64,000 nucleotides of DNA from Schmidtea nova (GCA_044892505.1 CM097884.1:160828001-160892000), one strand, 5' to 3'. Shown: positions 2,994-59,121, counted from the stretch's first letter. Made by a program: numbers and translations. The notes: generated from the letters alone by a model not told the origin.

Positions 2994-3046
2994 TTCCCTG
3001 ACCGGGAGTCGAACCCGGGCCACCTGGGTGAGAGCCAGGAATCCTA
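2994..3046 (-). pseudogene. tRNA-Glu disrupted by element copy 1 (nt 20-72 remain)
   Basis: Plus strand ...aggaatccta|gtaaacg instead of ...aggaatccta|accgctag. Confidence 0.95.
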
Positions 3047-3577
3047 GTAAACGTTTATTAATTATAATAAATTTTTCAAATTTACAATGGGACAATGCTC
3101 TACATGGAGCATGCCTTTCATGAAAGATACAGCAAATAAAGAGACAGAATTTCAATGATAGTTAAAATCAAATGTGAGAAAATAAGGTCTCAATAAATGT
3201 TGCTTTTCATAAATGTTCCCTGGCGATGATTTGAAATATTTCATCGGACTGTTTTTCCGGCTTTGCGACATCCTTCAGCCTATCTTTTCATGTCATGATC
3301 ACAGTCTTTTTGTTTTCTGAGGAATCCGCAGCAATAAAACTTCTTCACGAGTCAAGGTGTCTAGAGACATTGAGTTTACAGACGCTAGAATTGGTTCTAC
3401 TAAATAAATATACAAATATACATATATACATATATAAATCCTCGGACTCGGGCGGAAATAAATCTAAAATAAATTTTATCTACAAATTAAAAAAAAAGGT
3501 TTATACTATATACATTAAAATGGCAATTCTCCGCACAACGAGTGTCTGCATTTTGATCGTGGCATTCATTACAAATC

Positions 3578-6500
3578 TCACAAGTCTCTAAGATAACCAG
3601 TCGTATGAAAATGCCACCTATTGGCTGAGTGTTTGATATTACTTATCGCACACTGTTTCAAAAGAGGATCGATTTTCTTCAAAGGTATTCCAACCTTTAA
3701 AAGAACATCGAAAGTCAAAGGTGGAATTGATCCTAGAGAACCAATGATACAAGTGAGTAGTTCTACCTTGTAATCAGGTTTCGCGATTTGAATTGCCTTT
3801 CTTAACGATTCGTATTTTAACAGGTTTTCTTTATTTACCTGCTCAAAACTCGAAAGACAATCAATCGGACATTTCATGTCTACCATGAGAATTCTTTTCC
3901 TATTTACGTCGGTGATGATGAGGTCAACTCGCTCTTTAGAGTATGGAACCAACGAACAAGTTTGATCGATAACGACAATAAGATTCGGATCTGTCAGTTG
4001 ATCTGTTATCAATTTCAAGCAATCATTGTGTCTTTTTGTTGCAAGTGTTTGATGAACTTTACATGATTGCAAAACATGTGCCATTGTTTCCTCCTCAGAG
4101 TGGCAGCGACGACAAAGTCTTTCTTTTACATTTCGATAAGGTTTAGCTAGAAATGACAATGTATTCGTGCGAGCACGATGGATGAAATTCCAAGAGAATT
4201 CTGACAGATCACTTCGAAAGATTGCTTTATTGATCTTAGGCGAAAGAGTGATTGCTGATGCGATCAAATTACTTTTATTACTACTTTGCCATTTGGAAAG
4301 ATAAGAATCAAAAAGCGTATCATGCAAGATCTTAGAAATAGAATTCCGAAAATCGGGAGTTGCGATCAATGTACCTCGCTCTTTTGTTGTAATATGAAGC
4401 ACAGGTTCATTATTTAGGGTTTGAAAGGATATTCTAATGGCATGAATTTTATTCAGGAATTCTACAGATGTTCGCGCTCTCCGAAAACGTGTTTTCTTTC
4501 CATGATGGATGCGCTTGCATTCAATGCCATTTAACCAATCAAAGCTATCCTGAAGAGTTGGATGCTGAATTCCAAGTCGAGAACTAGTGACAAATTTCAA
4601 AGAGTCTGTATTGATCTTTTTTGCATAATTGCAAATGGAAGTAAAAAGTCGAAAAAAGTGCACTATGGTTTGGACATGATATTCGTCAAGCAGGTCAACA
4701 CAAGAAGCTCCACCATTTTCCGTGGAGTTGTAAAAATATGAAATCTCTGAATTTTCAGGAAGATTCATCATTTTTCTCAAATGACTTCTTAATTTACTTG
4801 TGTTGTTACCAGTGACATTGCTATTTCCATAAGGGATTGCCAAAGTACTTGTTTTTATTTCCCTCGTTCTAAAAGGAAAGATGAGGCGTGAATGTAGAAA
4901 AATCTTGTAAGCTTTGAGTTTTTGCCAGCCTAACAAGTCAGAGTTTGCAAGTTTTTTGGCGTCAGATATTACCTTATTTAGGATATCATAAGGGCTTTGA
5001 TCAATATCTTCTCCAACTGGGACACCAAGATACTGATAGAACTCGCGAGATAGTAATTTCTTGATTTTGATATTTTCAATAGAAATTTCACTATCTATGT
5101 GGACCTTAGGAAGTTGAATGTATCCACATTTTTCTGGTCGATATACAAAACCTATTTGTGCAGCAGTGTCAACAGCTATATCAGTGATTCGTTGCAAGTC
5201 ACTGACATTTTTTGATATTAAAGCAATGTCGTCTGCGTATGCAAGAATTTGTAACGGAGATGTGCCAATCATGAATGGTTCTACTGTCGATCGGCTGACA
5301 GCTTCAAGTACCGGATTAATCGCAATGGCGAATAAAATCATTGAAATTGGGCATCCTTGTTTCACCCCTTGTCTAATAGCTATGTTTGAAGTGAGAACTG
5401 GTCCGCAACTGTACATAGAAGATGTGTCGGAATAAAGTAGTTGCAATATCGTAGTGAACTCATCACATACGCCAATATATCGAAGGACAGACCACATGTA
5501 TTCATGAGGGACACTACCAAATGCGTCTTTAATGTCAAGCCATGCAATCGATATTGGACAATCTTTACTATATTTAGAGTGTTCCAAAGCAGCTGTCAGT
5601 ATGGAATTGTGTTCAACACAGCCATCGTGTTCTGAACCTCCCTTTTGTCCAATGTGTAGAATGTTGTTCAAATCTACCCAAGTAGTAAGACGTCTAGCCA
5701 ATATCGAAGCAAAAACCTTATAAATCACTGACAATAAGGCAATCGGCCTCCAAGATGACACATTATCGTATTTGTCATTCTTGTCAGGTTTCGGAATCAA
5801 AAGAGTCCTGAAAGATTTCCAATCATTTGGAACGATTTTATCGGTTATTATTCGGTTAAAAAGAAATGCAAGGAGATCCCCATCGGGATCCAAAAGACGC
5901 AAATCTCTATATTGAATACCATCAGAACCAGGAGATGTGTTGTCAGCTTTTTTAAGCTCAAACAATACCTCGACTGGCAATATTCGATCGAGTTTCAAAG
6001 GCTTTTGTGATTTTTTACAGAATTGAAGGACAGAATTCCAGCATTTGGATATAGGTAATGCGTGACTATAATATTTAATAATGTCTTCAATTGAAGGCCT
6101 TACATTTATTTTAAAATTATCAATGATTTTACTGACGGCTCTTTTCATTTCCGTCATAAATAGAGAAATAATTTGAGTTTTATTTAATTTTGAGTTATCT
6201 CTCTTATTTTTCCCTAAATAAAGTTTAAAAGTTGATTTCTTACGATCAGGAAATTCTTTGATAATTATGTCAATGATCTCATTGACAGTTGAAAATTTAA
6301 TTGCTATTAAAAGGTCTTTGATTTTAATTTTGCGTTGAATTAAATTTAATTTAACTAGTTCCTTTTCATTCCCTTTTGGTATTATTTTAGTGTTAATTTT
6401 ATTTGTTTTATTGGCAACTGGAACTAAGGAACTAATAACATTTCCAATATCGCGCAGGTTGATGTTTTCAAGGGATATGTCACAAGCATAATGTTTGATA

Positions 6501-8158
6501 AATGCGCATATAAGTATTTTACAGAGAAGACCTGAACCTCGCACATCATGTGGACAAATACCGTTTGTCAATGCACGACCAGGGGTTTCTCGTAATTCAT
6601 TAATTTTTTCAATGATGGTTTTACTCATTGAGAGATAATTAATACCGGATAAAAGAGTTGTTGGATTCAAAATATAATGTGCATCGGTATTGTAATCTAT
6701 TATTAATAAGTTTTCCCTTGATTTTTGGGGGGTTATAACTGAAAAAATGACTTGTGCTTTAACAAGACATTCATAATTTAGAAATGTACTGATGTATTGG
6801 GTACAATCATCGAGGATCGCCGTTGACATTGTTGCGTTTAACAAGATAAAGGTCGGTGATAATTTTAGATTGTTAAAATAAGTTGTTAGAATTTGATCGT
6901 CAAGCTTCCCATTTATTGTGTCTAAGTTTAAACAGATTTCATTTACATGTTTTAGTTTCAATGATTTTAGTGATTTTGTAGTATCTTCAAGATTGGCAAT
7001 GTTATTAAAAATTAACTTTTCTAATAAAGTAATGAAATATGATGCCATTATGATTGGTTCAACGGAAAATATTGGTGAGAAACTGATCTCGTGATCAATG
7101 GTAAAGTTAATCTTTCTCTGAAGGAAAAATTGATTCAAATAATCGGTCATATTTTCTCCTATACCGATTAATCTTTCTTTTACAGTTTGAAAGCCTGTAG
7201 TAAAAATGTGACTTTTTCCGAGTTGAACAGAGAACAGAAATAAGCACCAAGAGTTGTTATTTGGAATAATACTTATTACATGTTCAATGTATTGAAATTG
7301 TTTGAAAGTCACGTTTTCAATAATGAAAGCATTATTTTGCGCAACTATATTTGACGTTAATTCGGGAGAGAGAACCATTATATTAGTGTAGGTTGAAAAC
7401 CATTTATCAATCAATGTTGATATGCATGGGTTTTCGTTATATAGCATGATGTTATTTGCTTTGCTTTTATATCTAACTGCTTTCTTGAAGTTGATCAAGT
7501 TCATAAAGTTTGACTTTGGCGGACCACCTCCAATTGTTTTTGATGTAATAGTGGTACAGTTAGCATTATTATTGAAAACATCTTCCCTTATACTATTTAC
7601 AAAATTATCAGGAAAGTATTCCCAAACTTGACTAATTATCAATGCGTAAGCGCAGACAAAAGGCCCACAATCAAAGTCGTTATTTTGATATTCAAGTTTA
7701 ATATGGGGATTATATGTTACCGCCGCTTTAAGTTTAAACAATTTATTTAAAGCCATATTTATTTTAAGGGCGCTTGTTTTGTTGATAAATTTATTTTTAT
7801 TTTCAAGAATTGGATCAATGTAGTACGAAAGTAAGGATGATTTACAGTACACGAACAAGATCCAATGTGCGTTTGATATATTTAATGGGCAAAGTATTAT
7901 TTGTGCGTTAAACACTGTTTCTGGCAAGGAAATTATATTTTCCTCAAGATTTGCAAGTAAAATGCTAACAATATAACATTTAATGCAAGCATACATTTGG
8001 CTACTGATATGACGCTCAAGATAAAAGTCAATGTCATCATCAGTGAACCAGGCCTTTGGATCACGCACGGAATTTAAATTATTTACAGTTTTATTACTTG
8101 TGCTGTCTGCATCAGTCTCTTTTGAGATTGGGGCAGATATTAGGACTGATGCAGGCAC
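3578..8158 (-). CDS. ORF2: Ulp1/C48-like cysteine protease (+2 degenerate copies), reverse transcriptase, CCHC knuckle, restriction-like endonuclease (1526 aa; first codon is GTG, frame open to 8164)
   Basis: WFTDDDIDFY..H98W..D115P..Q158..DC164G; RT motifs WRPIALL, LDIKDAF, KQGCPIS, YADD (5228-5239), YLGV; CRRC-x8-H-x4-C; RHN; RVD-x14-DMK; KY; IIGSLG. Confidence 0.95.
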   Translation of the reverse strand: MPASVLISAPISKETDADSTSNKTVNNLNSVRDPKAWFTDDDIDFYLERHISSQMYACIKCYIVSILLANLEENIISLPETVFNAQIILCPLNISNAHWILFVYCKSSLLSYYIDPILENKNKFINKTSALKINMALNKLFKLKAAVTYNPHIKLEYQNNDFDCGPFVCAYALIISQVWEYFPDNFVNSIREDVFNNNANCTTITSKTIGGGPPKSNFMNLINFKKAVRYKSKANNIMLYNENPCISTLIDKWFSTYTNIMVLSPELTSNIVAQNNAFIIENVTFKQFQYIEHVISIIPNNNSWCLFLFSVQLGKSHIFTTGFQTVKERLIGIGENMTDYLNQFFLQRKINFTIDHEISFSPIFSVEPIIMASYFITLLEKLIFNNIANLEDTTKSLKSLKLKHVNEICLNLDTINGKLDDQILTTYFNNLKLSPTFILLNATMSTAILDDCTQYISTFLNYECLVKAQVIFSVITPQKSRENLLIIDYNTDAHYILNPTTLLSGINYLSMSKTIIEKINELRETPGRALTNGICPHDVRGSGLLCKILICAFIKHYACDISLENINLRDIGNVISSLVPVANKTNKINTKIIPKGNEKELVKLNLIQRKIKIKDLLIAIKFSTVNEIIDIIIKEFPDRKKSTFKLYLGKNKRDNSKLNKTQIISLFMTEMKRAVSKIIDNFKINVRPSIEDIIKYYSHALPISKCWNSVLQFCKKSQKPLKLDRILPVEVLFELKKADNTSPGSDGIQYRDLRLLDPDGDLLAFLFNRIITDKIVPNDWKSFRTLLIPKPDKNDKYDNVSSWRPIALLSVIYKVFASILARRLTTWVDLNNILHIGQKGGSEHDGCVEHNSILTAALEHSKYSKDCPISIAWLDIKDAFGSVPHEYMWSVLRYIGVCDEFTTILQLLYSDTSSMYSCGPVLTSNIAIRQGVKQGCPISMILFAIAINPVLEAVSRSTVEPFMIGTSPLQILAYADDIALISKNVSDLQRITDIAVDTAAQIGFVYRPEKCGYIQLPKVHIDSEISIENIKIKKLLSREFYQYLGVPVGEDIDQSPYDILNKVISDAKKLANSDLLGWQKLKAYKIFLHSRLIFPFRTREIKTSTLAIPYGNSNVTGNNTSKLRSHLRKMMNLPENSEISYFYNSTENGGASCVDLLDEYHVQTIVHFFRLFTSICNYAKKINTDSLKFVTSSRLGIQHPTLQDSFDWLNGIECKRIHHGKKTRFRRARTSVEFLNKIHAIRISFQTLNNEPVLHITTKERGTLIATPDFRNSISKILHDTLFDSYLSKWQSSNKSNLIASAITLSPKINKAIFRSDLSEFSWNFIHRARTNTLSFLAKPYRNVKERLCRRCHSEEETMAHVLQSCKVHQTLATKRHNDCLKLITDQLTDPNLIVVIDQTCSLVPYSKERVDLIITDVNRKRILMVDMKCPIDCLSSFEQVNKENLLKYESLRKAIQIAKPDYKVELLTCIIGSLGSIPPLTFDVLLKVGIPLKKIDPLLKQCAISNIKHSANRWHFHTTGYLRDL

Positions 8159-8167
8159 ACACCTTCA
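8099..8167 (-). promoter_or_regulatory. Putative UGA readthrough cassette (in-frame stop + downstream stem-loop), copy 1
   Basis: mRNA: UGA AGGUGUGUGC [CUGCAUCAGUC]-26 nt-[GACUGAUGCAG]; arms 8144-8154 and 8107-8117. Confidence 0.6.
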
Positions 8168-10909
8168 TTTATTTTTTTGTGTTACGCGCTTCGGTCTTTT
8201 AATAGTTTTGCGATGAATATTAATTATTTCCTCATTTGACGTAGCTGGACCTAAATCAATGTCAGTGGGAAGCAAGCGCTTAAGACTTTCTCTGTCTTTG
8301 TCTGATGTCAATAGAATGTTATCATCTATGTTAGGGGAAGGAGATATTTCTACAGATTCTTCATTAGAATCAACGACATTCTCAACAGTTTTCACACTAT
8401 CAATTGTTGTATCGACATTTTCAGCAATCGTCTCAGAATTTACATGTGGTAAAACATATTCAAGTAGTCTCGAAATGTGTACGCTCATACTAGGTGTACA
8501 AATTTTCCTACAATATTGAGGAACACGGAAACGTCTGTTGCCATTTAAGAAATATCTCTTATCTCTTATTACAAAAAACACGAGTCTCTTTGCTCTTAAA
8601 ATCTCATCATCGGTTAGTTCAGATTCAAAATCATTGATCTTACTAGATATTATATTAAGCGCCTTGATTTGATCCGACTTATTTGGAAGAGACTTATCTA
8701 CAAACTCTAAGAAAGCATTTAACTCAGAAATAGTTTTGGGAGAGATTATGTTATGGATCTTGTCAATCTCTTGAGACAAATTAACCTGCTTTAGTTTCAG
8801 AAGTCTTTCCTGACAACTAGTTTTATAATAAGAACTACTGAGATTCTCGATCATTTCTGGGCCCCATATCTCAATCGTGTCAATGTCCAATGAGTACGAG
8901 TTTTCAATATCTGTTATGGAATGCATTAAAAAGCAATTCCTAAGATAGTTTTGAACGTATATATCAAAACTCGGCTTAATAATTAATTTTAGGGAATCCC
9001 TTAATTTTAAATAATTTAGGTAAAAAATTATGTCAACCAGTTTTTGAGATGAAGTTGGTTGATCAAGAAGAGAACTAAACACATTGTCATCCTCTGACAT
9101 CTGAACAAAGTTCAGTAGCCCTAAATTAAACATGATATCGGAGGCACCATCTTCGTGCACAGCGACTGAATTTTCACTATAAATTTTAATAAATTTGCCC
9201 CCTGTAAATGAAATCTGTTCAGGGAATTTATTTTCAGATTTTAATTTTTCTATTAAATTATTTAATGCGTGAGGATTAGCATATGTGTTTTCAATAAAAC
9301 ACAATTCCTCAATTTCTGGGTGTGATTTAAATAAATTTTGTAATTGCAACCTTGACAATTCAGATGCAGTTTGAGTTGAGAAAATTTCATCTGAATCGCA
9401 AGTGCTAAGAATATCGAGCATTACAAAATCTCCGTCTAGATATTTAATCTGTGATTTTATTAAAAAGTCAGGGAGCTCTTTTCGCTGTTTTAATTCGCGA
9501 AGAATATTATTAATTTGTATTTCCCTGGACTTTAAATTACTAATAGACACAGTGCCGGCCAGTTTCGACGAAAGGGAACAAAGAAAACGCTTAATAATTG
9601 AAGAAGCCGGGACAAATTTCGTATTTGTATTGTTGGCCTTCAAAATGTTTGATCCAATCAAAAACGTCTTTGTAGAGGATTTTAAAATATTATTATTTAA
9701 AGGGACAACTTTATCAGGCACCAAATTCTGAAAAACACAGATATTATGATTTCTATAAAAGAAACCTTCAAACCCAGCGATGCTTAGTGGATTTTCCTCT
9801 TTTATAATAATTAAAAGGTCATTGTTAATTAAATCAAATTTGTTGCTTGATTCTTTTAATTTCAAAAGTTTGTGAAATTTGGGAAATAATCTAAGAAAAG
9901 AATTTTTCTCCTTTTTTGTTAATATACGCGGTAAAATATTTTCAAAAATTTCTTTTTTTAATTTAAGATGAGAATTTTTATTTTTATTATTATTTCTGAA
10001 ATTAGAATTTGATTTCATTTTCAAACTTTCCAATTTGAAATTTCGTTTATTTTGAAAGTTCTTATCAGTATTAAAATTATTTTTAGATTTAATTTCCTGA
10101 TCATTTGATTTTAAATTAGAAATGTTATTTGCAGTTGAAATTTCGAAATTTTCAAAATTTCGATTGTTTAAATTATCCAATTTAATCGCAGGTAAATTAA
10201 TATTTTCAAAAACAGGTTTAATAATTTTCTTTTTATTTTCATTATTATTATTAATAGTTATATTATAATTTTCCAGCCAATTTCCATCGATTGCATAGCT
10301 TTCAGGAGTAGATCCATCATCTAGTAGAAGGATCTTTTCAAAATTATTATTTTTATTAAAAAATAAATTTTTGTTATTTAAAGTACTTTTTACATTATTA
10401 TTATTATCTTTATAATCACTTAAATTTTGACTATTCGGCTTTTCTAGTTGAATTGTTCGTTCGTTTTTAGTCTGTGTAGAATTATTTCTGTAAATTGTCG
10501 ACTTATTTAATAAAATTTTATGACATGAATAGCAAAGATTGCCTGCACTTTTGTCATTTTTATTTACATTCAAAGAGTTGTCATACAATTCGCTATTTTT
10601 ATCTAAATTAGGAATTATTCTAAAATTTTCAATATTAGATTTACAATTAAAAGTAGATAAATTAGCATATAAATTACCACGACCAAAACCGGACACACCA
10701 TTGTCAGAATTACCATTGTGAAAATTACAATTATAATTTAAATTATCATTTAGATTTTTCGAACCAAAATTAGATATAGGTTTATTTACAAAATCTTGGT
10801 TCGAAACTTCCAAAAATTTAACAATATAATCTAACTTACAGTTATTAGAATAAATCATCCTTTCAAGCTCTGACAAATTCGCCCCAAATGGCACAAAATT
10901 ATCCTGCAT
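8165..10909 (-). CDS. ORF1 of retrotransposon, 914 aa, unknown function, Asn-rich N-terminal half
   Basis: ATG at 10909, TGA at 8165-8167; intact in all four complete copies; basic C-terminus HRKTIKRPKRVTQKNK. Confidence 0.85.
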   Translation of the reverse strand: MQDNFVPFGANLSELERMIYSNNCKLDYIVKFLEVSNQDFVNKPISNFGSKNLNDNLNYNCNFHNGNSDNGVSGFGRGNLYANLSTFNCKSNIENFRIIPNLDKNSELYDNSLNVNKNDKSAGNLCYSCHKILLNKSTIYRNNSTQTKNERTIQLEKPNSQNLSDYKDNNNNVKSTLNNKNLFFNKNNNFEKILLLDDGSTPESYAIDGNWLENYNITINNNNENKKKIIKPVFENINLPAIKLDNLNNRNFENFEISTANNISNLKSNDQEIKSKNNFNTDKNFQNKRNFKLESLKMKSNSNFRNNNKNKNSHLKLKKEIFENILPRILTKKEKNSFLRLFPKFHKLLKLKESSNKFDLINNDLLIIIKEENPLSIAGFEGFFYRNHNICVFQNLVPDKVVPLNNNILKSSTKTFLIGSNILKANNTNTKFVPASSIIKRFLCSLSSKLAGTVSISNLKSREIQINNILRELKQRKELPDFLIKSQIKYLDGDFVMLDILSTCDSDEIFSTQTASELSRLQLQNLFKSHPEIEELCFIENTYANPHALNNLIEKLKSENKFPEQISFTGGKFIKIYSENSVAVHEDGASDIMFNLGLLNFVQMSEDDNVFSSLLDQPTSSQKLVDIIFYLNYLKLRDSLKLIIKPSFDIYVQNYLRNCFLMHSITDIENSYSLDIDTIEIWGPEMIENLSSSYYKTSCQERLLKLKQVNLSQEIDKIHNIISPKTISELNAFLEFVDKSLPNKSDQIKALNIISSKINDFESELTDDEILRAKRLVFFVIRDKRYFLNGNRRFRVPQYCRKICTPSMSVHISRLLEYVLPHVNSETIAENVDTTIDSVKTVENVVDSNEESVEISPSPNIDDNILLTSDKDRESLKRLLPTDIDLGPATSNEEIINIHRKTIKRPKRVTQKNK

Positions 10910-11270
10910 TAATATTTTAAAAAATTTATTAACCTTTTCAATATCTTTCTTATAAATTTATTATAATGAGTTATTTAAACAAATTTATATTAAAGGTTTT
11001 CAAATTTCGAAATTTACTTTTCCTCGACAAAATCAAACAACGCATGGCAAATGTTTGCCATTTTCAATCAAATGACAATCTCTTTCACAAATCTCATAGA
11101 ATTTTGATTTTGTAAAATTATTAATAATTTTTTTTCAAATAATGGTAACGACCTTGGAACGTTTATATTAATCCAATTTGTTGAATTTGATTTTGAGTAG
11201 AGCAAATTAGTTTCGACAAATTTACAACGTTTACAATCTTATCATGATGATAAGATTGTAAAAAAAAATA

Positions 11271-11646: not shown

Positions 11647-11718
11647 TTCCCTGACCGGGAGACAAACCCGGGCCACCTGGGTGAGAGCCAGGAATCCTAA
11701 CCGCTAGACCATCAGGGA
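11647..11718 (-). pseudogene. tRNA-Glu with mutated T-loop/B-box
   Basis: GGTTCGAC changed to GGTTTGTC (11662, 11664; C56T, A58T). Confidence 0.75.
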
Positions 11719-18790: not shown

Positions 18791-18843
18791 TTCCCTGACC
18801 GGGAGTCGAACCCGGGCCACTTGGGTGAGAGCCAGGAATCCAA
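18791..18843 (-). pseudogene. tRNA-Glu (variant allele) disrupted by element copy 2
   Basis: nt 20-72 remain; substitutions at 18821 and 18842 shared with gene 43254-43325. Confidence 0.95.
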
Positions 18844-19374
18844 GTAAACGTTTATTAATTATAATAAATTTTCCAAATTTACAATGGGACAATGCTCTAC
18901 ATGGAGCATGCCTTTCATGAAAGATACAGCAAATAAAGAGACAGAATTTCAATGATAGTTAAAATCAAATGTGAGAAAATAAGGTCTCAATAAATGTTGC
19001 TTTTCATAAATGTTCCCTGGCGATGATTTGAAATATTTCATCGGACTGTTTTTCCGGCTTTGCGGCATCCTTCAGCCTATCTTTTCATGTCATGATCACA
19101 GTCTTTTTGTTTTCTGAGGAATCCGCAGCAATAAAACTTCTTCACGAGTCAAGGTGTCTAGAGACATTGAGTTTACAGACGCTAGAATTGGTTCTACTAA
19201 ATAAATATACAAATATACATATATACATATATAAATCCTCGGACTCGGGCGGAAATAAATCTAAAATAAATTTTATCTACAAATTAAAAAAAAAGGTTTA
19301 TACTATATACATTAAAATGGCAATTCTCCGCACAACGAGTGTCCGCATTTTGATCGTGGCATTCATTACAAATC

Positions 19375-22300
19375 TCACAAGTCTCTAAGATAACCAGTCG
19401 TATGAAAATGCCACCTATTGGCTGAGTGTTTGATATTACTTATCGCACACTGTTTCAAAAGAGGATCGATTTTCTTCAAAGGTATTCCAACCTTTAAAAG
19501 AACATCGAAAGTCAAAGGTGGAATTGATCCTAGAGAACCAATGATACAAGTGAGTAGTTCTACCTTGTAATCAGGTTTCGCGATTTGAATTGCCTTTCTT
19601 AACGATTCGTATTTTAACAGGTTTTCTTTATTTACCTGCTCAAAACTCGAAAGACAATCAATCGGACATTTCATGTCTACCATGAGAATTCTTTTCCTAT
19701 TTACGTCGGTGATGATGAGGTCAACTCGCTCTTTAGAGTATGGAACCAACGAACAAGTTTGATCGATAACGACAATAAGATTCGGATCTGTCAGTTGATC
19801 TGTTATCAATTTCAAACAATCATTGTGTCTTTTTGTTGCAAGTGTTTGATGAACTTTACATGATTGCAAAACATGTGCCATTGTTTCCTCCTCAGAGTGG
19901 CAGCGACGACAAAGTCTTTCTTTTACATTTCGATAAGGTTTAGCTAGAAATGACAATGTATTCGTGCGAGCACGATGGATGAAATTCCAAGAGAATTCTG
20001 ACAGATCACTTCGAAAGATTGCTTTATTGATCTTAGGCGAAAGAGTGATTGCTGATGCGATCAAATTACTTTTATTACTACTTTGCCATTTGGAAAGATA
20101 AGAATCAAAAAGCGTATCATGCAAGATCTTAGAAATAGAATTCCGAAAATCGGGAGTTGCGATCAATGTACCTCGCTCTTTTGTTGTAATATGAAGCACA
20201 GGTTCATTATTTAGGGTTTGAAAGGATATCCTAATGGCATGAATTTTATTCAGGAATTCTACAGATGTTCGCGCTCTCCGAAAACGTGTTTTCTTTCCAT
20301 GATGGATGCGCTTGCATTCAATGCCATTTAACCAATCAAAGCTATCCTGAAGAGTTGGATGCTGAATTCCAAGTCGAGAACTAGTGACAAATTTCAAAGA
20401 GTCTGTATTGATCTTTTTTGCATAATTGCAAATGGAAGTAAAAAGTCGAAAAAAGTGCACTATGGTTTGGACATGATATTCGTCAAGCAGGTCAACACAA
20501 GAAGCTCCACCATTTTCCGTGGAGTTGTAAAAATATGAAATCTCTGAATTTTCAGGAAGATTCATCATTTTTCTCAAATGACTTCTCAATTTACTTGTGT
20601 TGTTACCAGTGACATTGCTATTTCCATAAGGGATTGCCAAAGTACTTGTTTTTATTTCCCTCGTTCTAAAAGGAAAGATGAGGCGTGAATGTAGAAAAAT
20701 CTTGTAAGCTTTGAGTTTTTGCCAGCCTAACAAGTCAGAGTTTGCAAGTTTTTTGGCGTCAGATATTACCTTATTTAGGATATCATAAGGGCTTTGATCA
20801 ATATCTTCTCCAACTGGGACACCAAGATACTGATAGAACTCGCGAGATAGCAATTTCTTGATTTTGATATTTTCAATAGAAATTTCACTATCTATGTGGA
20901 CCTTAGGAAGTTGAATGTATCCACATTTTTCTGGTCGATATACAAAACCTATTTGTGCAGCAGTGTCAACAGCTATATCAGTGATTCGTTGCAAGTCACT
21001 GACATTTTTTGATATTAAAGCAATGTCGTCTGCGTATGCAAGAATTTGTAACGGAGATGTGCCAATCATGAATGGTTCTACTGTCGATCGGCTGACAGCT
21101 TCAAGTACCGGATTAATCGCAATGGCGAATAAAATCATTGAAATTGGGCATCCTTGTTTCACCCCTTGTCTAATAGCTATGTTTGAAGTGAGAACTGGTC
21201 CGCAACTGTACATAGAAGATGTGTCGGAATAAAGTAGTTGCAATATCGTAGTGAACTCATCACATACGCCAATATATCGAAGGACAGACCACATGTATTC
21301 ATGAGGGACACTACCAAATGCGTCTTTAATGTCAAGCCATGCAATCGATATTGGACAATCTTTACTATATTTAGAGTGTTCCAAAGCAGCTGTCAGTATG
21401 GAATTGTGTTCAACACAGCCATCGTGTTCTGAACCTCCCTTTTGTCCAATGTGTAGAATGTTGTTCAAATCTACCCAAGTAGTAAGACGTCTAGCCAATA
21501 TCGAAGCAAAAACCTTATAAATCACTGACAATAAGGCAATCGGCCTCCAAGATGACACATTATCGTATTTGTCATTCTTGTCAGGTTTCGGAATCAAAAG
21601 AGTCCTGAAAGATTTCCAATCATTTGGAACGATTTTATCGGTTATTATTCGGTTAAAAAGAAATGCAAGGAGATCCCCATCGGGATCCAAAAGACGCAAA
21701 TCTCTATATTGAATACCATCAGAACCAGGAGATGTGTTGTCAGCTTTTTTAAGCTCAAACAATACCTCGACTGGCAATATTCGATCGAGTTTCAAAGGCT
21801 TTTGTGATTTTTTACAGAATTGAAGGACAGAATTCCAGCATTTGGATATAGGTAATGCGTGACTATAATATTTAATAATGTCTTCAATTGAAGGCCTTAC
21901 ATTTATTTTAAAATTATCAATGATTTTACTGACGGCTCTTTTCATTTCCGTCATAAATAGAGAAATAATTTGAGTTTTATTTAATTTTGAGTTATCTCTC
22001 TTATTTTTCCCTAAATAAAGTTTAAAAGTTGATTTCTTACGATCAGGAAATTCTTTGATAATTATGTCAATGATCTCATTGACAGTTGAAAATTTAATTG
22101 CTATTAAAAGGTCTTTGATTTTAATTTTGCGTTGAATTAAATTTAATTTAACTAGTTCCTTTTCATTCCCTTTTGGTATTATTTTAGTGTTAATTTTATT
22201 TGTTTTATTGGCAACTGGAACTAAGGAACTAATAACATTTCCAATATCGCGCAGGTTGATGTTTTCAAGGGATATGTCACAAGCATAATGTTTGATAAAT

Positions 22301-23955
22301 GCGCATATAAGTATTTTACAGAGAAGACCTGAACCTCGCACATCATGTGGACAAATACCGTTTGTCAATGCACGACCAGGGGTTTCTCGTAATTCATTAA
22401 TTTTTTCAATGATGGTTTTACTCATTGAGAGATAATTAATACCGGATAAAAGAGTTGTTGGATTCAAAATATAATGTGCATCGGTATTGTAATCTATTAT
22501 TAATAAGTTTTCCCTTGATTTTTGGGGGGTTATAACTGAAAAAATGACTTGTGCTTTAACAAGACATTCATAATTTAGAAATGTACTGATGTATTGGGTA
22601 CAATCATCGAGGATCGCCGTTGACATTGTTGCGTTTAACAAGATAAAGGTCGGTGATAATTTTAGATTGTTAAAATAAGTTGTTAGAATTTGATCGTCAA
22701 GCTTCCCATTTATTGTGTCTAAGTTTAAACAGATTTCATTTACATGTTTTAGTTTCAATGATTTTAGTGATTTTGTAGTATCTTCAAGATTGGCAATGTT
22801 ATTAAAAATTAACTTTTCTAATAAAGTAATGAAATATGATGCCATTATGATTGGTTCAACGGAAAATATTGGTGAGAAACTGATCTCGTGATCAATGATA
22901 AAGTTAATCTTTCTCTGAAGGAAAAATTGATTCAAATAATCGGTCATATTTTCTCCTATACCGATTAATCTTTCTTTTACAGTTTGAAAGCCTGTAGTAA
23001 AAATGTGACTTTTTCCGAGTTGAACAGAGAACAGAAATAAGCACCAAGAGTTGTTATTTGGAATAATACTTATTACATGTTCAATGTATTGAAATTGTTT
23101 GAAAGTCACGTTTTCAATAATGAAAGCATTATTTTGCGCAACTATATTTGACGTTAATTCGGGAGAGAGAACCATTATATTAGTGTAGGTTGAAAACCAT
23201 TTATCAATCAATGTTGATATGCATGGGTTTTCGTTATATAGCATGATGTTATTTGCTTTGCTTTTATATCTAACTGCTTTCTTGAAGTTGATCAAGTTCA
23301 TAAAGTTTGACTTTGGCGGACCACCTCCAATTGTTTTTGATGTAATAGTGGTACAGTTAGCATTATTATTGAAAACATCTTCCCTTATACTATTTACAAA
23401 ATTATCAGGAAAGTATTCCCAAACTTGACTAATTATCAATGCGTAAGCGCAGACAAAAGGCCCACAATCAAAGTCGTTATTTTGATATTCAAGTTTAATA
23501 TGGGGATTATATGTTACCGCCGCTTTAAGTTTAAACAATTTATTTAAAGCCATATTTATTTTAAGGGCGCTTGTTTTGTTGATAAATTTATTTTTATTTT
23601 CAAGAATTGGATCAATGTAGTACGAAAGTAAGGATGATTTACAGTACACGAACAAGATCCAATGTGCGTTTGATATATTTAATGGGCAAAGTATTATTTG
23701 TGCGTTAAACACTGTTTCTGGCAAGGAAATTATATTTTCCTCAAGATTTGCAAGTAAAATGCTAACAATATAACATTTAATGCAAGCATACATTTGGCTA
23801 CTGATATGACGCTCAAGATAAAAGTCAATGTCATCATCAGTGAACCAGGCCTTTGGATCACGCACGGAATTTAAATTATTTACAGTTTTATTACTTGTGC
23901 TGTCTGCATCAGTCTCTTTTGAGATTGGGGCAGATATTAGGACTGATGCAGGCAC
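19375..23955 (-). CDS. ORF2 (Ulp1-like/RT/CCHC/RLE), copy 2, 1526 aa
   Basis: Near-identical to copy 1, all motifs intact. Confidence 0.95.
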   Translation of the reverse strand: MPASVLISAPISKETDADSTSNKTVNNLNSVRDPKAWFTDDDIDFYLERHISSQMYACIKCYIVSILLANLEENIISLPETVFNAQIILCPLNISNAHWILFVYCKSSLLSYYIDPILENKNKFINKTSALKINMALNKLFKLKAAVTYNPHIKLEYQNNDFDCGPFVCAYALIISQVWEYFPDNFVNSIREDVFNNNANCTTITSKTIGGGPPKSNFMNLINFKKAVRYKSKANNIMLYNENPCISTLIDKWFSTYTNIMVLSPELTSNIVAQNNAFIIENVTFKQFQYIEHVISIIPNNNSWCLFLFSVQLGKSHIFTTGFQTVKERLIGIGENMTDYLNQFFLQRKINFIIDHEISFSPIFSVEPIIMASYFITLLEKLIFNNIANLEDTTKSLKSLKLKHVNEICLNLDTINGKLDDQILTTYFNNLKLSPTFILLNATMSTAILDDCTQYISTFLNYECLVKAQVIFSVITPQKSRENLLIIDYNTDAHYILNPTTLLSGINYLSMSKTIIEKINELRETPGRALTNGICPHDVRGSGLLCKILICAFIKHYACDISLENINLRDIGNVISSLVPVANKTNKINTKIIPKGNEKELVKLNLIQRKIKIKDLLIAIKFSTVNEIIDIIIKEFPDRKKSTFKLYLGKNKRDNSKLNKTQIISLFMTEMKRAVSKIIDNFKINVRPSIEDIIKYYSHALPISKCWNSVLQFCKKSQKPLKLDRILPVEVLFELKKADNTSPGSDGIQYRDLRLLDPDGDLLAFLFNRIITDKIVPNDWKSFRTLLIPKPDKNDKYDNVSSWRPIALLSVIYKVFASILARRLTTWVDLNNILHIGQKGGSEHDGCVEHNSILTAALEHSKYSKDCPISIAWLDIKDAFGSVPHEYMWSVLRYIGVCDEFTTILQLLYSDTSSMYSCGPVLTSNIAIRQGVKQGCPISMILFAIAINPVLEAVSRSTVEPFMIGTSPLQILAYADDIALISKNVSDLQRITDIAVDTAAQIGFVYRPEKCGYIQLPKVHIDSEISIENIKIKKLLSREFYQYLGVPVGEDIDQSPYDILNKVISDAKKLANSDLLGWQKLKAYKIFLHSRLIFPFRTREIKTSTLAIPYGNSNVTGNNTSKLRSHLRKMMNLPENSEISYFYNSTENGGASCVDLLDEYHVQTIVHFFRLFTSICNYAKKINTDSLKFVTSSRLGIQHPTLQDSFDWLNGIECKRIHHGKKTRFRRARTSVEFLNKIHAIRISFQTLNNEPVLHITTKERGTLIATPDFRNSISKILHDTLFDSYLSKWQSSNKSNLIASAITLSPKINKAIFRSDLSEFSWNFIHRARTNTLSFLAKPYRNVKERLCRRCHSEEETMAHVLQSCKVHQTLATKRHNDCLKLITDQLTDPNLIVVIDQTCSLVPYSKERVDLIITDVNRKRILMVDMKCPIDCLSSFEQVNKENLLKYESLRKAIQIAKPDYKVELLTCIIGSLGSIPPLTFDVLLKVGIPLKKIDPLLKQCAISNIKHSANRWHFHTTGYLRDL

Positions 23956-26721: not shown

Positions 26722-27081
26722 TAATATTTTAAAAAATTTATTTACCTTTTCAATATCTTTCTTATAAATTTATTATAATGAGTTATTTAAACAAATTTAT
26801 ATTAAAGGTTTTCAAATTTCGAAATTTACTTTTCCTCGACAAAATCAAACAACGCATGGCAAATGTTTGCCATTTTCAATCAAATGACAATCTCTTTCAC
26901 AAATCTCATAGAATTTTGATTTTGTAAAATTATTAATAATTTTTTTTCAAATAATGGTAACGACCTTGGAACGTTTATATTAATCCAATTTGTTGAATTT
27001 GATTTTGAGTAGAGCAAATTAGTTTCGACAAATTTACAACGTTTACAATCTTATCATGATGATAAGAAAGTGAAAAAAATA

Positions 27082-32343: not shown

Positions 32344-32396
32344 TTCCCTGACCGGGAGTCGAACCCGGGCCACCTGGGTGAGAGCCAGGAATCCTA
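32344..32396 (-). pseudogene. tRNA-Glu disrupted by element copy 3
   Basis: aggaatccta|gtaaacg junction. Confidence 0.95.
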
Positions 32397-32927
32397 GTAA
32401 ACGTTTATTAATTATAATAAATTTTTCAAATTTACAATGGGACAATGCTCTACATGGAGCATGCCTTTCATGAAAGATACAGCAAATAAAGAGACAGAAT
32501 TTCAATGATAGTTAAAATCAAATGTGAGAAAATAAGGTCTCAATAAATGTTGCTTTTCATAAATGTTCCCTGGCGATGATTTGAAATATTTCATCGGACT
32601 GTTTTTCCGGCTTTGCGGCATCCTTCAGCCTATCTTTTCATGTCATGATAACAGTCTTTTTGTTTTCTGAGGAATCCGCAGCAATAAAACTTCTTCACGA
32701 GTCAAGGTGTCTAGAGACATTGAGTTTACAGACGCTAGAATTGGTTCTACTAAATAAATATACAAATATACATATATACATATATAAATCCTCGGACTCG
32801 GGCGGAAATAAATCTAAAATAAATTTTATCTACAAATTAAAAAAAAAGGTTTATACTATATACATTAAAATGGCAATTCTCCGCACAACGAGTGTCTGCA
32901 TTTTGATCGTGGCATTCATTACAAATC

Positions 32928-35900
32928 TCACAAGTCTCTAAGATAACCAGTCGTATGAAAATGCCACCTATTGGCTGAGTGTTTGATATTACTTATCGCA
33001 CACTGTTTCAAAAGAGGATCGATTTTCTTCAAAGGTATTCCAACCTTTAAAAGAACATCGAAAGTCAAAGGTGGAATTGATCCTAGAGAACCAATGATAC
33101 AAGTGAGTAGTTCTACCTTGTAATCAGGTTTCGCGATTTGAATTGCCTTTCTTAACGATTCGTATTTTAACAGGTTTTCTTTATTTACCTGCTCAAAACT
33201 CGAAAGACAATCAATCGGACATTTCATGTCTACCATGAGAATTCTTTTCCTATTTACGTCGGTGATGATGAAGTCAACTCGCTCTTTAGAGTATGGAACC
33301 AACGAACAAGTTTGATCGATAACGACAATAAGATTCGGATCTGTCAGTTGATCTGTTATCAATTTCAAACAATCATTGTGTCTTTTTGTTGCAAGTGTTT
33401 GATGAACTTTACATGATTGCAAAACATGTGCCATTGTTTCCTCCTCAGAGTGGCAGCGACGACAAAGTCTTTCTTTTACATTTCGATAAGGTTTAGCTAG
33501 AAATGACAATGTATTCGTGCGAGCACGATGGATGAAATTCCAAGAGAATTCTGACAGATCACTTCGAAAGATTGCTTTATTGATCTTAGGCGAAAGAGTG
33601 ATTGCTGATGCGATCAAATTACTTTTATTACTACTTTGCCATTTGGAAAGATAAGAATCAAAAAGCGTATCATGCAAGATCTTAGAAATAGAATTCCGAA
33701 AATCGGGAGTTGCGATCAATGTACCTCGCTCTTTTGTTGTAATATGAAGCACAGGTTCATTATTTAGGGTTTGAAAGGATATCCTAATGGCATGAATTTT
33801 ATTCAGGAATTCTACAGATGTTCGCGCTCTCCGAAAACGTGTTTTCTTTCCATGATGGATGCGCTTGCATTCAATGCCATTTAACCAATCAAAGCTATCC
33901 TGAAGAGTTGGATGCTGAATTCCAAGTCGAGAACTAGTGACAAATTTCAAAGAGTCTGTATTGATCTTTTTTGCATAATTGCAAATGGAAGTAAAAAGTC
34001 GAAAAAAGTGCACTATGGTTTGGACATGATATTCGTCAAGCAGGTCAACACAAGAAGCTCCACCATTTTCCGTGGAGTTGTAAAAATATGAAATCTCTGA
34101 ATTTTCAGGAAGATTCATCATTTTTCTCAAATGACTTCTCAATTTACTTGTGTTGTTACCAGTGACATTGCTATTTCCATAAGGGATTGCCAAAGTACTT
34201 GTTTTTATTTCCCTCGTTCTAAAAGGAAAGATGAGGCGTGAATGTAGAAAAATCTTGTAAGCTTTGAGTTTTTGCCAGCCTAACAAGTCAGAGTTTGCAA
34301 GTTTTTTGGCGTCAGATATTACCTTATTTAGGATATCATAAGGGCTTTGATCAATATCTTCTCCAACTGGGACACCAAGATACTGATAGAACTCGCGAGA
34401 TAGCAATTTCTTGATTTTGATATTTTCAATAGAAATTTCACTATCTATGTGGACCTTAGGAAGTTGAATGTATCCACATTTTTCTGGTCGATATACAAAA
34501 CCTATTTGTGCAGCAGTGTCAACAGCTATATCAGTGATTCGTTGCAAGTCACTGACATTTTTTGATATTAAAGCAATGTCGTCTGCGTATGCAAGAATTT
34601 GTAACGGAGATGTGCCAATCATGAATGGTTCTACTGTCGATCGGCTGACAGCTTCAAGTACCGGATTAATCGCAATGGCGAATAAAATCATTGAAATTGG
34701 GCATCCTTGTTTCACCCCTTGTCTAATAGCTATGTTTGAAGTGAGAACTGGTCCGCAACTGTACATAGAAGATGTGTCGGAATAAAGTAGTTGCAATATC
34801 GTAGTAAACTCATCACATACGCCAATATATCGAAGGACAGACCACATGTATTCATGAGGGACACTACCAAATGCGTCTTTAATGTCAAGCCATGCAATCG
34901 ATATTGGACAATCTTTACTATATTTAGAGTGTTCCAAAGCAGCTGTCAGTATGGAATTGTGTTCAACACAGCCATCGTGTTCTGAACCTCCCTTTTGTCC
35001 AATGTGTAGAATGTTGTTCAAATCTACCCAAGTAGTAAGACGTCTAGCCAATATCGAAGCAAAAACCTTATAAATCACTGACAATAAGGCAATCGGCCTC
35101 CAAGATGACACATTATCGTATTTGTCATTCTTGTCAGGTTTCGGAATCAAAAGAGTCCTGAAAGATTTCCAATCATTTGGAACGATTTTATCGGTTATTA
35201 TTCGGTTAAAAAGAAATGCAAGGAGATCCCCATCGGGATCCAAAAGACGCAAATCTCTATATTGAATACCATCAGAACCAGGAGATGTGTTGTCAGCTTT
35301 TTTTAAGCTCAAACAATACCTCGACTGGCAATATTCGATCGAGTTTCAAAGGCTTTTGTGATTTTTTACAGAATTGAAGGACAGAATTCCAGCATTTGGA
35401 TATAGGTAATGCGTGACTATAATATTTAATAATGTCTTCAATTGAAGGCCTTACATTTATTTTAAAATTATCAATGATTTTACTGACGGCTCTTTTCATT
35501 TCCGTCATAAATAGAGAAATAATTTGAGTTTTATTTAATTTTGAGTTATCTCTCTTATTTTTCCCTAAATAAAGTTTAAAAGTTGATTTCTTACGATCAG
35601 GAAATTCTTTGATAATTATGTCAATGATCTCATTGACAGTTGAAAATTTAATTGCTATTAAAAGGTCTTTGATTTTAATTTTGCGTTGAATTAAATTTAA
35701 TTTAACTAGTTCCTTTTCATTCCCTTTTGGTATTATTTTAGTGTTAATTTTATTTGTTTTATTGGCAACTGGAACTAAGGAACTAATAACATTTCCAATA
35801 TCGCGCAGGTTGATGTTTTCAAGGGATATGTCACAAGCATAATGTTTGATAAATGCGCATATAAGTATTTTACAGAGAAGACCTGAACCTCGCACATCAT

Positions 35901-37509
35901 GTGGACAAATACCGTTTGTCAATGCACGACCAGGGGTTTCTCGTAATTCATTAATTTTTTCAATGATGGTTTTACTCATTGAGAGATAATTAATACCGGA
36001 TAAAAGAGTTGTTGGATTCAAAATATAATGTGCATCGGTATTGTAATCTATTATTAATAAGTTTTCCCTTGATTTTTGGGGGGTTATAACTGAAAAAATG
36101 ACTTGTGCTTTAACAAGACATTCATAATTTAGAAATGTACTGATGTATTGGGTACAATCATCGAGGATCGCCGTTGACATTGTTGCGTTTAACAAGATAA
36201 AGGTCGGTGATAATTTTAGATTGTTAAAATAAGTTGTTAGAATTTGATCGTCAAGCTTCCCATTTATTGTGTCTAAGTTTAAACAGATTTCATTTACATG
36301 TTTTAGTTTCAATGATTTTAGTGATTTTGTAGTATCTTCAAGATTGGCAATGTTATTAAAAATTAACTTTTCTAATAAAGTAATGAAATATGATGCCATT
36401 ATGATTGGTTCAACGGAAAATATTGGTGAGAAACTGATCTCGTGATCAATGGTAAAGTTAATCTTTCTCTGAAGGAAAAATTGATTCAAATAATCGGTCA
36501 TATTTTCTCCTATACCGATTAATCTTTCTTTTACAGTTTGAAAGCCTGTAGTAAAAATGTGACTTTTTCCGAGTTGAACAGAGAACAGAAATAAGCACCA
36601 AGAGTTGTTATTTGGAATAATACTTATTACATGTTCAATGTATTGAAATTGTTTGAAAGTCACGTTTTCAATAATGAAAGCATTATTTTGCGCAACTATA
36701 TTTGACGTTAATTCGGGAGAGAGAACCATTATATTAGTGTAGGTTGAAAACCATTTATCAATCAATGTTGATATGCATGGGTTTTCGTTATATAGCATGA
36801 TGTTATTTGCTTTGCTTTTATATCTAACTGCTTTCTTGAAGTTGATCAAGTTCATAAAGTTTGACTTTGGCGGACCACCTCCAATTGTTTTTGATGTAAT
36901 AGTGGTACAGTTAGCATTATTATTGAAAACATCTTCCCTTATACTATTTACAAAATTATCAGGAAAGTATTCCCAAACTTGACTAATTATCAATGCGTAA
37001 GCGCAGACAAAAGGCCCACAATCAAAGTCGTTATTTTGATATTCAAGTTTAATATGGGGATTATATGTTACCGCCGCTTTAAGTTTAAACAATTTATTTA
37101 AAGCCATATTTATTTTAAGGGCGCTTGTTTTGTTGATAAATTTATTTTTATTTTCAAGAATTGGATCAATGTAGTACGAAAGTAAGGATGATTTACAGTA
37201 CACGAACAAGATCCAATGTGCGTTTGATATATTTAATGGGCAAAGTATTATTTGTGCGTTAAACACTGTTTCTGGCAAGGAAATTATATTTTCCTCAAGA
37301 TTTGCAAGTAAAATGCTAACAATATAACATTTAATGCAAGCATACATTTGGCTACTGATATGACGCTCAAGATAAAAGTCAATGTCATCATCAGTGAACC
37401 AGGCCTTTGGATCACGCACTGAATTTAAATTATTTACAGTTTTATTACTTGTGCTGTCTGCATCAGTCTCTTTTGAGATTGGGGCAGATATTAAGACTGA
37501 TGCAGGCAC
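32928..37509 (-). pseudogene. ORF2, copy 3, split by +1 frameshift just before the RT
   Basis: T7 instead of T6 at 35298-35304 gives ORFs 35293-37509 and 32928-35312; may be a homopolymer sequencing error. Confidence 0.75.
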
Positions 37510-40260: not shown

Positions 40261-40621
40261 TAATATTTTAAAAAATTTATTAACCTTTTCAATATCTTTC
40301 TTATAAATTTATTATAATGAGTTATTTAAACAAATTTATATTAAAGGTTTTCAAATTTCGAAATTTACTTTTCCTCGACAAAATCAAACAACGCATGGCA
40401 AATGTTTGCCATTTTCAATCAAATGACAATCTCTTTCACAAATCTCATAGAATTTTGATTTTGTAAAATTATTAATAATTTTTTTTCAAATAATGGTAAC
40501 GACCTTGGAACGTTTATATTAATCCAATTTGTTGAATTTGATTTTGAGTAGAGCAAATTAGTTTCGACAAATTTACAACGTTTACAATCTTATCATGATG
40601 ATAAGATTGTAAAAAAAAATA

Positions 40622-43253: not shown

Positions 43254-43325
43254 TTCCCTGACCGGGAGTCGAACCCGGGCCACTTGGGTGAGAGCCAGGA
43301 ATCCAAACCGCTAGACCATCAGGGA
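43254..43325 (-). pseudogene. Variant tRNA-Glu (A21T, G42A), probably impaired
   Basis: 43305 t>a changes conserved A21; 43284 c>t creates a C28-A42 mismatch in the anticodon stem. Confidence 0.65.
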
Positions 43326-49645: not shown

Positions 49646-49698
49646 TTCCCTGACCGGGAGTCGAACCCGGGCCACCTGGGTGAGAGCCAGGAATCCTA
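49646..49698 (-). pseudogene. tRNA-Glu disrupted by element copy 4
   Basis: aggaatccta|gtaaacg junction. Confidence 0.95.
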
Positions 49699-50232
49699 GT
49701 AAACGTTTATTAATTATAATAAATTTTTCAAATTTACAATGGGACAATGCTCTACATGGAGCATGCCTTTCATGAAAGATACAGCAAATAAAGAGACAGA
49801 ATTTCAATGATAGTTAAAATCAAATGTGAGAAAATAAGGTCTCAATAAATGTTGCTTTTCATAAATGTTCCCTGGCGATGATTTGAAATATTTCATCGGA
49901 CTGTTTTTCCGGCTTTGCGACATCCTTCAGCCTATCTTTTCATGTCATGATCACAGTCTTTTTGTTTTCTGAGGAATCCGCAGCAATAAAACTTCTTCAC
50001 GAGTCAAGGTGTCTAGAGACATTGAGTTTACAGACGCTAGAATTGGTTCTACTAAATAAATATACAAATATACATATATACATATATAAATCCTCGGACT
50101 CGGGCGGAAAAAATCTAAAATAAATTTTTTCTACAAATTAAAAAAAAAAAAAGGTTTATACTATATACATTAAAATGGCAATTCTCCGCACAACGAGTGT
50201 CTCCATTTTGATCGTGGCATTCATTACAAATC

Positions 50233-59068: not shown

Positions 59069-59121
59069 TTCCCTGACCGGGAGTCGAACCCGGGCCACCT
59101 GGGTGAGAGCCAGGAATCCTA
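59069..59121 (-). pseudogene. tRNA-Glu disrupted by element copy 5
   Basis: aggaatccta|gtaaacg junction. Confidence 0.95.

Follow-up and report, generated by a model that had tools for sequence, protein, structure and literature searches.

Protease-fold domains in ORF2 of a planarian retrotransposon

The stretch of DNA analyzed here (hereafter the window) comprises 64,000 nucleotides from Schmidtea nova (GCA_044892505.1 CM097884.1:160828001-160892000). Over its whole length, 376-bp units follow one another in a tandem array, every unit bearing one minus-strand tRNA-Glu(CTC) gene; the array is interrupted by five minus-strand copies (A to E) of a single retrotransposon of the type that lacks long terminal repeats (non-LTR), with two open reading frames (ORFs) and apparently of NeSL/LIN25-like affiliation. 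Copy A, a full element of 7,943 bp (3047-10989, minus strand), lies within one array unit, and its ORF2 begins with three consecutive Ulp1/SENP-fold domains, designated D1, D2 and D3, which are the main subject of this study.

ORF2 (3578-8158, minus strand) encodes 1526 amino acids, residue n beginning at window position 8158-3(n-1), in the order D1-D2-D3, reverse transcriptase (RT), and C-terminal zinc motif with restriction-like endonuclease; all features of ORF2 named below likewise lie on the minus strand. D1 (7574-8059) spans residues 34-195, D2 (6965-7423) residues 246-398, and D3 (6431-6952) residues 403-576. The RT (5021-5797; residues 788-1046) was recognized by Pfam RVT_1 (E 1.9e-26), and the C-terminal zinc motif and endonuclease region (3581-4207; residues 1318-1526) by motifs of the family alignment, in which C1349, C1352, H1361 and C1366, along with R1410, D1412, D1427 and K1429, are invariant; a zf-RVT match to residues 1318-1370 is weak (E 0.0015, under the Pfam cut-off). 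The succession of RT, Cys/His motif and PD-(D/E)XK endonuclease that marks the NeSL clade is thus present, its endonuclease part being identified solely from alignment motifs. No zinc finger was found N-terminal of the RT in ORF2. In the family alignment, conservation of the ORF's N-terminal third falls far below that of the RT and endonuclease.

An earlier reading of this DNA, referred to here as the original prediction, had proposed a triplicated Ulp1/SENP-like domain, in which one active protease was followed by two pseudo-proteases. Every motif it quoted is present at the ORF2 position given, and the limits it gave (7574-8056, 6974-7432 and 6425-6916) fall within a few residues of the modeled folds. 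The unit spacing of 190-200 residues that it estimated is roughly right, the distance being 205 residues from His98 to Ser303 and 178 from Ser303 to Arg481.

The family considered here has 17 members, the window element and 16 relatives derived from metagenome and Sequence Read Archive (SRA) assemblies. Fourteen of these relatives, five of them nearly full length, were obtained by exhaustive phmmer search with ORF2 residues 200-620, and two (P0015 and P0016) were added by a full-length profile search. Their identity to the window element in the D1-D3 region is 18-46%. The family is small in public data, amounting to ~16 relatives among 1.8 billion representative proteins; a word-seeded protein search with residues 200-620 returned no matches, a word-seeded search with the D2+D3 alignment returned nothing beyond a relative already known (P0007), and a scan of Joint Genome Institute (JGI) metagenomes with one family alignment returned no relatives.

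D1 is readily assigned. Its residues 78-176 belong to Pfam Peptidase_C48 (PF02902), with 33.1 bits against a cut-off of 20.7, and its family profile matches SENP1 (E 2.6e-10) over the entire catalytic domain. The motifs WFTDDDIDFY (from residue 36), AHWILF (His98), YYIDP (Asp115), YQNND (Gln158) and FDCGP (Cys164) supply the ordered His, Asp and Cys of clan CE, together with the oxyanion Gln, and in the profile alignment Trp36, His98-Trp99, Asp115, Gln158 and Cys164 stand opposite the matching residues of SENP1/2. Both tryptophans of the Gly-Gly clamp (Trp36 and Trp99) are present. Cys164 and Gln158 are invariant in the family, and His98 and Asp115 occur in every member that covers those positions. 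Judged by its sequence, D1 carries every residue needed by an active SENP-type cysteine protease, and the four catalytic residues that had been listed as intact are confirmed by their alignment to SENP1/2.

The other two domains escape detection at the level of sequence. BLASTP of D1 against the rest, and of D2 against D3, gave nothing significant (best E 0.13 over 17 residues), and Pfam gave no match to residues 196-603 of the window element at E<=10. The segment-by-segment comparison with Peptidase_C48 proposed in the original prediction succeeded for D1 and for neither of the others, the C48 model returning nothing at E<=10 for D2 in 11 family members or for D3 in 14, such that neither qualifies for the family by sequence; profiles of D2 and D3 likewise found none of the PDB sequences at E<=10.

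Evidence of a shared ancestry comes from comparison of profiles for D1, D2 and D3, cut from the family alignment and aligned pairwise by hhalign. D2 and D3 are matched with a probability of 90% (E 1.5e-6, 101 columns), D1 and D3 with 81% (E 1.1e-5, 143 columns), and D1 and D2 with 70% (E 4.2e-5, 64 columns), all three alignments being in register on a core composed of a strand, the His-Trp strand and the Asp strand. Scores between domains were 36-45 with the first alignments and 32-41 with enlarged ones. Column-shuffled profiles (100 per target) scored ~12 on average (standard deviation 2.4; maximum 20.5), reversed profiles scored 12-16, and, when segments of 175 residues from elsewhere in the same proteins were compared (39 comparisons), the mean was 12.7 and the maximum 19.2. 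Since the family profile scores exceed both the shuffled and the same-protein controls, the repeat relation of the three domains lies above chance. The score of D2 with D3, the highest of the three, hints that these two are the closer pair.

Structural prediction led to the same assignment. AlphaFold2 was run template-free on alignments holding D2 sequences alone (n=11) or D3 sequences alone (n=14), and yielded models with a predicted local distance difference test score (pLDDT) of 85.7 and a predicted template modeling score (pTM) of 0.83 for D2, and 89.9 and 0.87, respectively, for D3; the order of helices and strands is identical in the two. Searched against the PDB with Foldseek, the D3 model found Ulp1 first (E 1e-5, template modeling (TM) score 0.70-0.71, with an alignment covering 175-181 of 184 residues), and SENP2, SENP5, SENP1, Den1, XopD and others after it, and the D2 model found Den1/SENP8 first (E 1.2e-5), with Ulp1 at a TM score of 0.70. 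For each domain, all 50 of the 50 matches listed were clan CE-type proteases, comprising Ulp1/SENP/Den1, bacterial CE effectors and core proteases of the poxvirus I7L type. In a library of viral structures, Ulp1-like proteases of phaeoviruses and giant viruses ranked first for D3. Sequence identity of D2 and D3 to the Ulp1-type structures is 8-17%. Both domains adopt the clan CE fold in these predicted models, and as putative members of that fold they are best called Ulp1-fold pseudo-protease domains. Two outcomes had been named in advance as fatal to a triplication, namely lack of a clan CE fold and lack of profile similarity to D1 in the second and third segments; both points were examined and neither came out against it, the similarity to D1 being found by profile and the fold in separate models.

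The catalytic positions of D2 and D3 have diverged. D2 of the window element has Ser303 (NSWCLF) in the His column, Thr320 in the Asp column (SHIFT, at residue 316) and no Cys at the helix start. Across the family its His column is occupied by Ser, Ile, Met, Gln, Arg, Asp, Glu or Phe, and its Asp column by Thr, Glu, Asp, Asn or Ser; the Trp beside the His column is retained in 6 of 10 members. D3 has Arg481 (KSRENL) in the His column, Asn498 (YILNP) in the Asp column and Cys546 (GLLCKILICAF) at the nucleophile position, as assigned by hhalign and by the helix start in the model. This His column holds His in 8 of 14 members, and otherwise Arg, Leu, Tyr, Asn, Lys or Gly, the last two depending on the alignment; Asn occupies the Asp column in 12 of 14, and Ser the nucleophile position in 8 of 11 relatives. 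The statement that the third domain lacks His is hence correct for the window element, with its Arg481, and incorrect for most relatives, which keep the His along with Ser in place of Cys and Asn in place of Asp. The N-terminal clamp Trp is lost from both domains, and the His-adjacent Trp also from D3. A complete catalytic triad in D2 or D3 was found in none of the 17 family members, in keeping with the proposed loss of catalysis in two copies; by the same observation, that loss predates the diversification of the family. The losses are thus family-wide and old, rather than particular to this copy.

The best-conserved positions of D3 are Asn498-Pro499, His537 and Ser542, the latter two residing in a conserved loop (His537-Asp-x-Arg-Gly-Ser542-Gly) ahead of the Cys546 helix; selection appears to have retained the former cleft region of this domain. 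D2 and D3 are open and alignable with few gaps across elements 18-46% identical, and the linker between D1 and D2 varies freely. Their charge is neutral to acidic (isoelectric point mostly 5-7), which argues for binding of protein rather than nucleic acid. The possibility that D2 and D3 are DNA-binding substitutes for N-terminal zinc fingers was also considered, and is unsupported by this charge.

D3 is found in every family member covering the region. D2 is absent from P0009 (L004 1909-5943) and from the fragment P0008, in which D1 runs directly into D3, and is therefore a separable module. Trees of the RT and endonuclease, built with and without an outgroup, distinguished neither loss of D2 from its ancestral absence in P0009 and P0008 nor the order of the duplications.

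The ORF1-ORF2 junction and the Gly-Gly-Gly behind D1

ORF1 (8165-10909, minus strand; 914 amino acids) is Asn-rich and terminates with a TGA at 8167-8165. Pfam gave nothing significant for it (best E 0.0053, under the gathering cut-off). Its first half is very Asn-rich, and alignment to relatives is limited to the C-terminal ~350 residues. Toward the ORF1 C-terminus, a zinc-ribbon-like motif of the form CxxC-(17-19 residues)-CxxC was observed in four relatives, at ~1700-1800 in L001, ~300-400 in L002, ~1600-1700 in L004 and ~800-900 in L005; the motif was found in neither the window element (8168-8400) nor L003.

ORF1 and ORF2 of the window element occupy the same frame, divided by the single TGA and two codons, and this in-frame arrangement recurs in all seven elements compared (the window element and six related contigs), most of which have no AUG ahead of D1. 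The TGA is followed by an extended stem-loop, the two together occupying 8100-8167 (minus strand) and constituting a candidate signal for stop-codon readthrough. The stem-loop starts 6-7 nucleotides past the TGA, and RNAalifold assigns it 17 pairs, with compensatory changes seen in 6; in L004 and L006, for instance, the two 9-base arms depart from those of the window stem at corresponding positions. Corresponding TGA and stem-loop regions lie at 1959-2040 in L001, 511-590 in L002, 1980-2060 in L003, 1822-1915 in L004 and 368-440 in L006. A stop codon followed at such spacing by an RNA stem-loop is the layout of known readthrough signals, and the arrangement suggests programmed readthrough that would yield an ORF1-ORF2 polyprotein.

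Immediately behind D1, residues Gly210-Gly211-Gly212 (7523-7531, minus strand) form a candidate self-cleavage site. The triplet is conserved in every member that covers the position, as GSG or GNG in three of them; the linker that comes next varies in length. The triplet contains the sole conserved Gly-Gly lying between domains, other conserved pairs lying within the RT and thumb regions; a search for further processing sites revealed no Gly-Gly at the ORF1-ORF2 junction. Ulp1-type (C48) enzymes cleave after Gly-Gly, and the conserved triplet hints at a substrate of D1.

Element copies, target and known relatives

The window sequence contains no N, shows nothing of human appearance and yields 69 tRNA matches, of which the one at the window start is clipped by the window edge; the copies of the element are spaced by runs of 3 to 24 array units. 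Two units carry diverged tRNAs with lower Rfam scores (11647-11718 and 43254-43325), and the unit beginning at 27458 measures 374 bp, 2 bp under the standard 376. The 3' junction of copy A lies within the tRNA body and its 5' junction ~25 bp upstream of the tRNA start, with a target loss of ~45 bp at the insertion. Identical 3' junctions inside the tRNA body occur at all five copies (3035-3059, 18832-18856, 32385-32409, 49687-49711 and 59110-59134), and identical 5' junctions ~25 bp upstream of the tRNA at four (10977-11001, 26789-26813, 40328-40352 and 57647-57671). These recurring junctions in tRNA-Glu display the use of one fixed site in a multicopy RNA gene that typifies the NeSL clade; they reflect either strictly site-specific insertion or the spread of one inserted unit by unequal crossing-over.

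The copies differ by 5-12 nucleotides over the 4.6 kb of ORF2. The D1-D3 region lies at 22228-23856 in copy B (ORF2 at 19375-23955, with 5 nucleotide differences from copy A across ORF2), at 35782-37410 in copy C (ORF2 at 32928-37509) and at 53086-54714 in copy D (ORF2 at 50233-54813, with 12 differences from copy A), all on the minus strand. In copy C, one extra base at ~35304, between D3 and the RT, breaks ORF2 into two ORFs and leaves all three protease-fold domains intact. Copy E shows D3, D2 and part of D1 (62506-64000, minus strand), the first 77 codons lying beyond the window end. The near identity of the five copies, in four of which ORF2 runs unbroken as far as the window shows it, suggests that the element family is active now or was so recently.

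Comparison with described elements places these features in context. NeSL elements and Utopia-1_TSP are described as having a single N-terminal Ulp1-like protease, and LIN25_SM of Schmidtea mediterranea, deposited as a Repbase family, is reported to be a tRNA-Glu-specific relative of NeSL (Kojima and Jurka 2015, PMC4640811); the premise of the original prediction that NeSL-type elements have one such domain agrees with this account. The window element resembles the NeSL type in its site specificity, its restriction-like type of endonuclease, its target in a multicopy small-RNA gene and its Ulp1-like protease N-terminal of the RT (PMC4640811). For the NeSL type, a lone protease and N-terminal zinc fingers have been described. 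The window element departs from this with three Ulp1-fold domains, two of them apparently dead, with an ORF2 that lacks any zinc finger N-terminal of the RT, and with an ORF1 of its own that connects to ORF2 in frame across a TGA. Like LIN25_SM, the window element lies in a tRNA-Glu gene, with a near-identical adjoining tRNA-Glu body, and has a very similar AT-rich 3' tail ending ...aataaacgtt... (window 3047-3100, minus strand; PMC4640811 S6 Fig); on the other hand, the window array is of tRNA-Glu(CTC) and the published junctions are labelled tRNA-Glu-TTC, and the two do not break the tRNA at the same point. A NeSL/LIN25-like assignment is suggested by this 3' tail and target, and is a comparison of nucleic acids rather than proteins. 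From that one supplementary figure, the tail and tRNA match also indicate a planarian as the likely host, in preference to Trichomonas, which had come into consideration through NeSL-1_TV and a similar GC content. Already published, accordingly, are the N-terminal Ulp1-like protease of NeSL and the targeting of tRNA-Glu by the planarian LIN family; in the literature consulted, which was covered in part and did not extend to Repbase entries, no account was found of tandem or inactive Ulp1-fold copies in transposons, nor of readthrough in this non-LTR clade.

Origin and possible roles of the three domains

The explanation we favor, with a probability of roughly 0.75, is that of a tRNA-Glu-specific NeSL/LIN25-like element encoding three clan CE domains, two of them catalytically dead, in a polyprotein processed by D1. 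D1, D2 and D3 most likely arose by internal duplication, and duplication followed by loss of catalytic residues is supported by the profiles, models and residue content set out above. Relative to Ulp1, SENP and Den1 (MEROPS family C48, clan CE), D1 shares sequence, the His-Asp-Cys residues, the oxyanion Gln and both Trp clamps, and the resemblance of D2 and D3 extends to the fold, with neither a match to the sequence model nor a complete triad; the cellular enzymes have one catalytic domain. The original prediction is thereby partly supported, in that its duplication and loss pass scrutiny; its functional part, including docking on SUMOylated RNA polymerase III or silencing factors, is putative.

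The following mechanism is proposed. Readthrough of the single TGA, aided by the conserved downstream stem-loop, would produce the ORF1-ORF2 polyprotein, and D1, as the first domain past the stop, would act as a processing protease in the manner of retroviral gag-pro-pol. D1 would cut after the Gly-Gly-Gly behind it, and possibly at further sites, leaving D2-D3 as the new N-terminus of an RT-endonuclease protein. The shared frame, the covarying stem-loop and the conserved Gly-Gly-Gly are the grounds on which such processing is proposed. In the gammaretroviral gag-UAG-pro-pol of murine leukemia virus, a single in-frame stop is followed within a few nucleotides by an RNA structure, and the protease is the first domain after the stop. 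The layout here, of stop, RNA structure and protease, then RT, would be analogous; it differs in that the protease is a clan CE cysteine enzyme rather than an aspartic one, the element is of non-LTR type, and readthrough is putative.

D2 and D3 would most likely serve as non-catalytic binding or regulatory modules, either docking a partner protein or peptide or controlling D1. Such a role is proposed because both have been kept open and foldable over deep divergence while the linker decays, and because neither is basic. A dead copy that regulates an active domain or docks partners is familiar from the D1/D2 domains of receptor tyrosine phosphatases and the JH1/JH2 domains of JAK kinases. By analogy, an active domain here precedes duplicated copies that keep the fold and not the chemistry, although the folds and the biology are unrelated and the regulatory role of D2 and D3 is putative. 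The docking mode envisaged in the original prediction, on SUMO or another ubiquitin-like protein, is somewhat disfavored by the loss of clamp tryptophans from D2 and D3, insofar as it implies canonical binding of a Gly-Gly tail.

Several points weigh against this overall explanation. The D2 and D3 models are predictions from shallow alignments of 11 and 14 sequences, and what any of the domains does, beyond its fold and residue content, we infer. ORF2 could be expressed by termination and reinitiation instead of readthrough, and the cleavage site is projected from conservation together with the specificity for Gly-Gly that Ulp1-type enzymes are known to have. D3 is unlikely to grip a Gly-Gly tail canonically, both clamp tryptophans being gone, and residual or altered catalysis by D3 may persist in relatives, most of which combine His, Asn and Ser. 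Finally, the absence of D2 from P0009 and P0008 indicates that the family does not require this domain.

Alternative explanations were weighed against the same observations. One holds that duplication left D2 and D3 as relics without function, riding inside an essential ORF. This would accord with the absence of D2 from P0009 and P0008 with the rest of the ORF kept, and with the much lower conservation of the N-terminal third of ORF2 than of its RT and endonuclease; we nevertheless consider it unlikely, since a neutral spacer would be expected to decay or shrink, as the D1-D2 linker does, whereas both domains are open, with few gaps and with conserved core and cleft positions, in members down to 18-27% identity, are coherent enough for AlphaFold2 to model at a pLDDT of 86-90, and, in the case of D3, occur in every member that covers the region. 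A similarly doubtful standing is accorded to the idea that dead D2 and D3 are natural substrate traps that hold, at genes transcribed by RNA polymerase III (Pol III), either a ubiquitin-like modifier or a host protein in modified form, for which the replacement of Cys by Ser in D3 of most relatives and the conserved cleft loop can be cited. If it were true, traps rather than zinc fingers would guide the element to tRNA-Glu genes, a new mode of target choice for a retrotransposon.

We regard as a little less probable again the view that D3, and perhaps D2, is still enzymatic through non-canonical residues (a His-Asn-Ser set, or the loop of His537 and Ser542), giving the protein two or three hydrolase activities. 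Conservation in D3 does peak at the old active site (Asn498-Pro499, His537 and Ser542), His persists in its catalytic column in 8 of 14 members and Ser takes its nucleophile position in 8 of 11, and exchanges of Cys and Ser as nucleophile are known in other protease clans. However, neither D2 nor D3 has a complete canonical triad in any member, the His column of D3 is variable and is Arg in this active-looking element, and the triad columns of D2 are unconserved. Moreover, SENPs in which the Cys has been mutated to Ser are inactive and act as substrate traps, PDB 2g4d and 5aek, both among the Foldseek matches, being deposits of this kind. Least credible by some distance is the notion of D2 and D3 as alpha/beta domains of separate origin, whose likeness to D1 stems from chance, composition bias or artefacts of prediction, for although they give no BLASTP, Pfam or PDB signal at the sequence level, are just 8-17% identical to Ulp1-type structures, and derive from an AT-rich genome whose proteins share a skewed composition, their profile-profile scores exceed those of the controls (column-shuffled, reversed and same-protein) by ~10 standard deviations, the catalytic strands being aligned in register, their secondary-structure order is the same, and models from alignments free of D1 retrieve, among the matches listed, clan CE-type proteases exclusively, with TM scores reaching 0.71 across almost the full domain.

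Taken as an element with one live and two dead clan CE domains, this retrotransposon bears on a long-standing feature of its relatives. Ulp1-like proteases of the NeSL type have been known ever since such elements were first described, their role being unproven; here the fold would be present three times over, with two copies apparently dead in all 17 members of the family. The location of the live copy between a conserved, leaky-looking stop and a conserved Gly-Gly-Gly suggests a testable strategy for a non-LTR element resembling that of gag-pro-pol. The arrangement may also offer a compact natural case of pseudo-enzyme domains retained beside their active parent.

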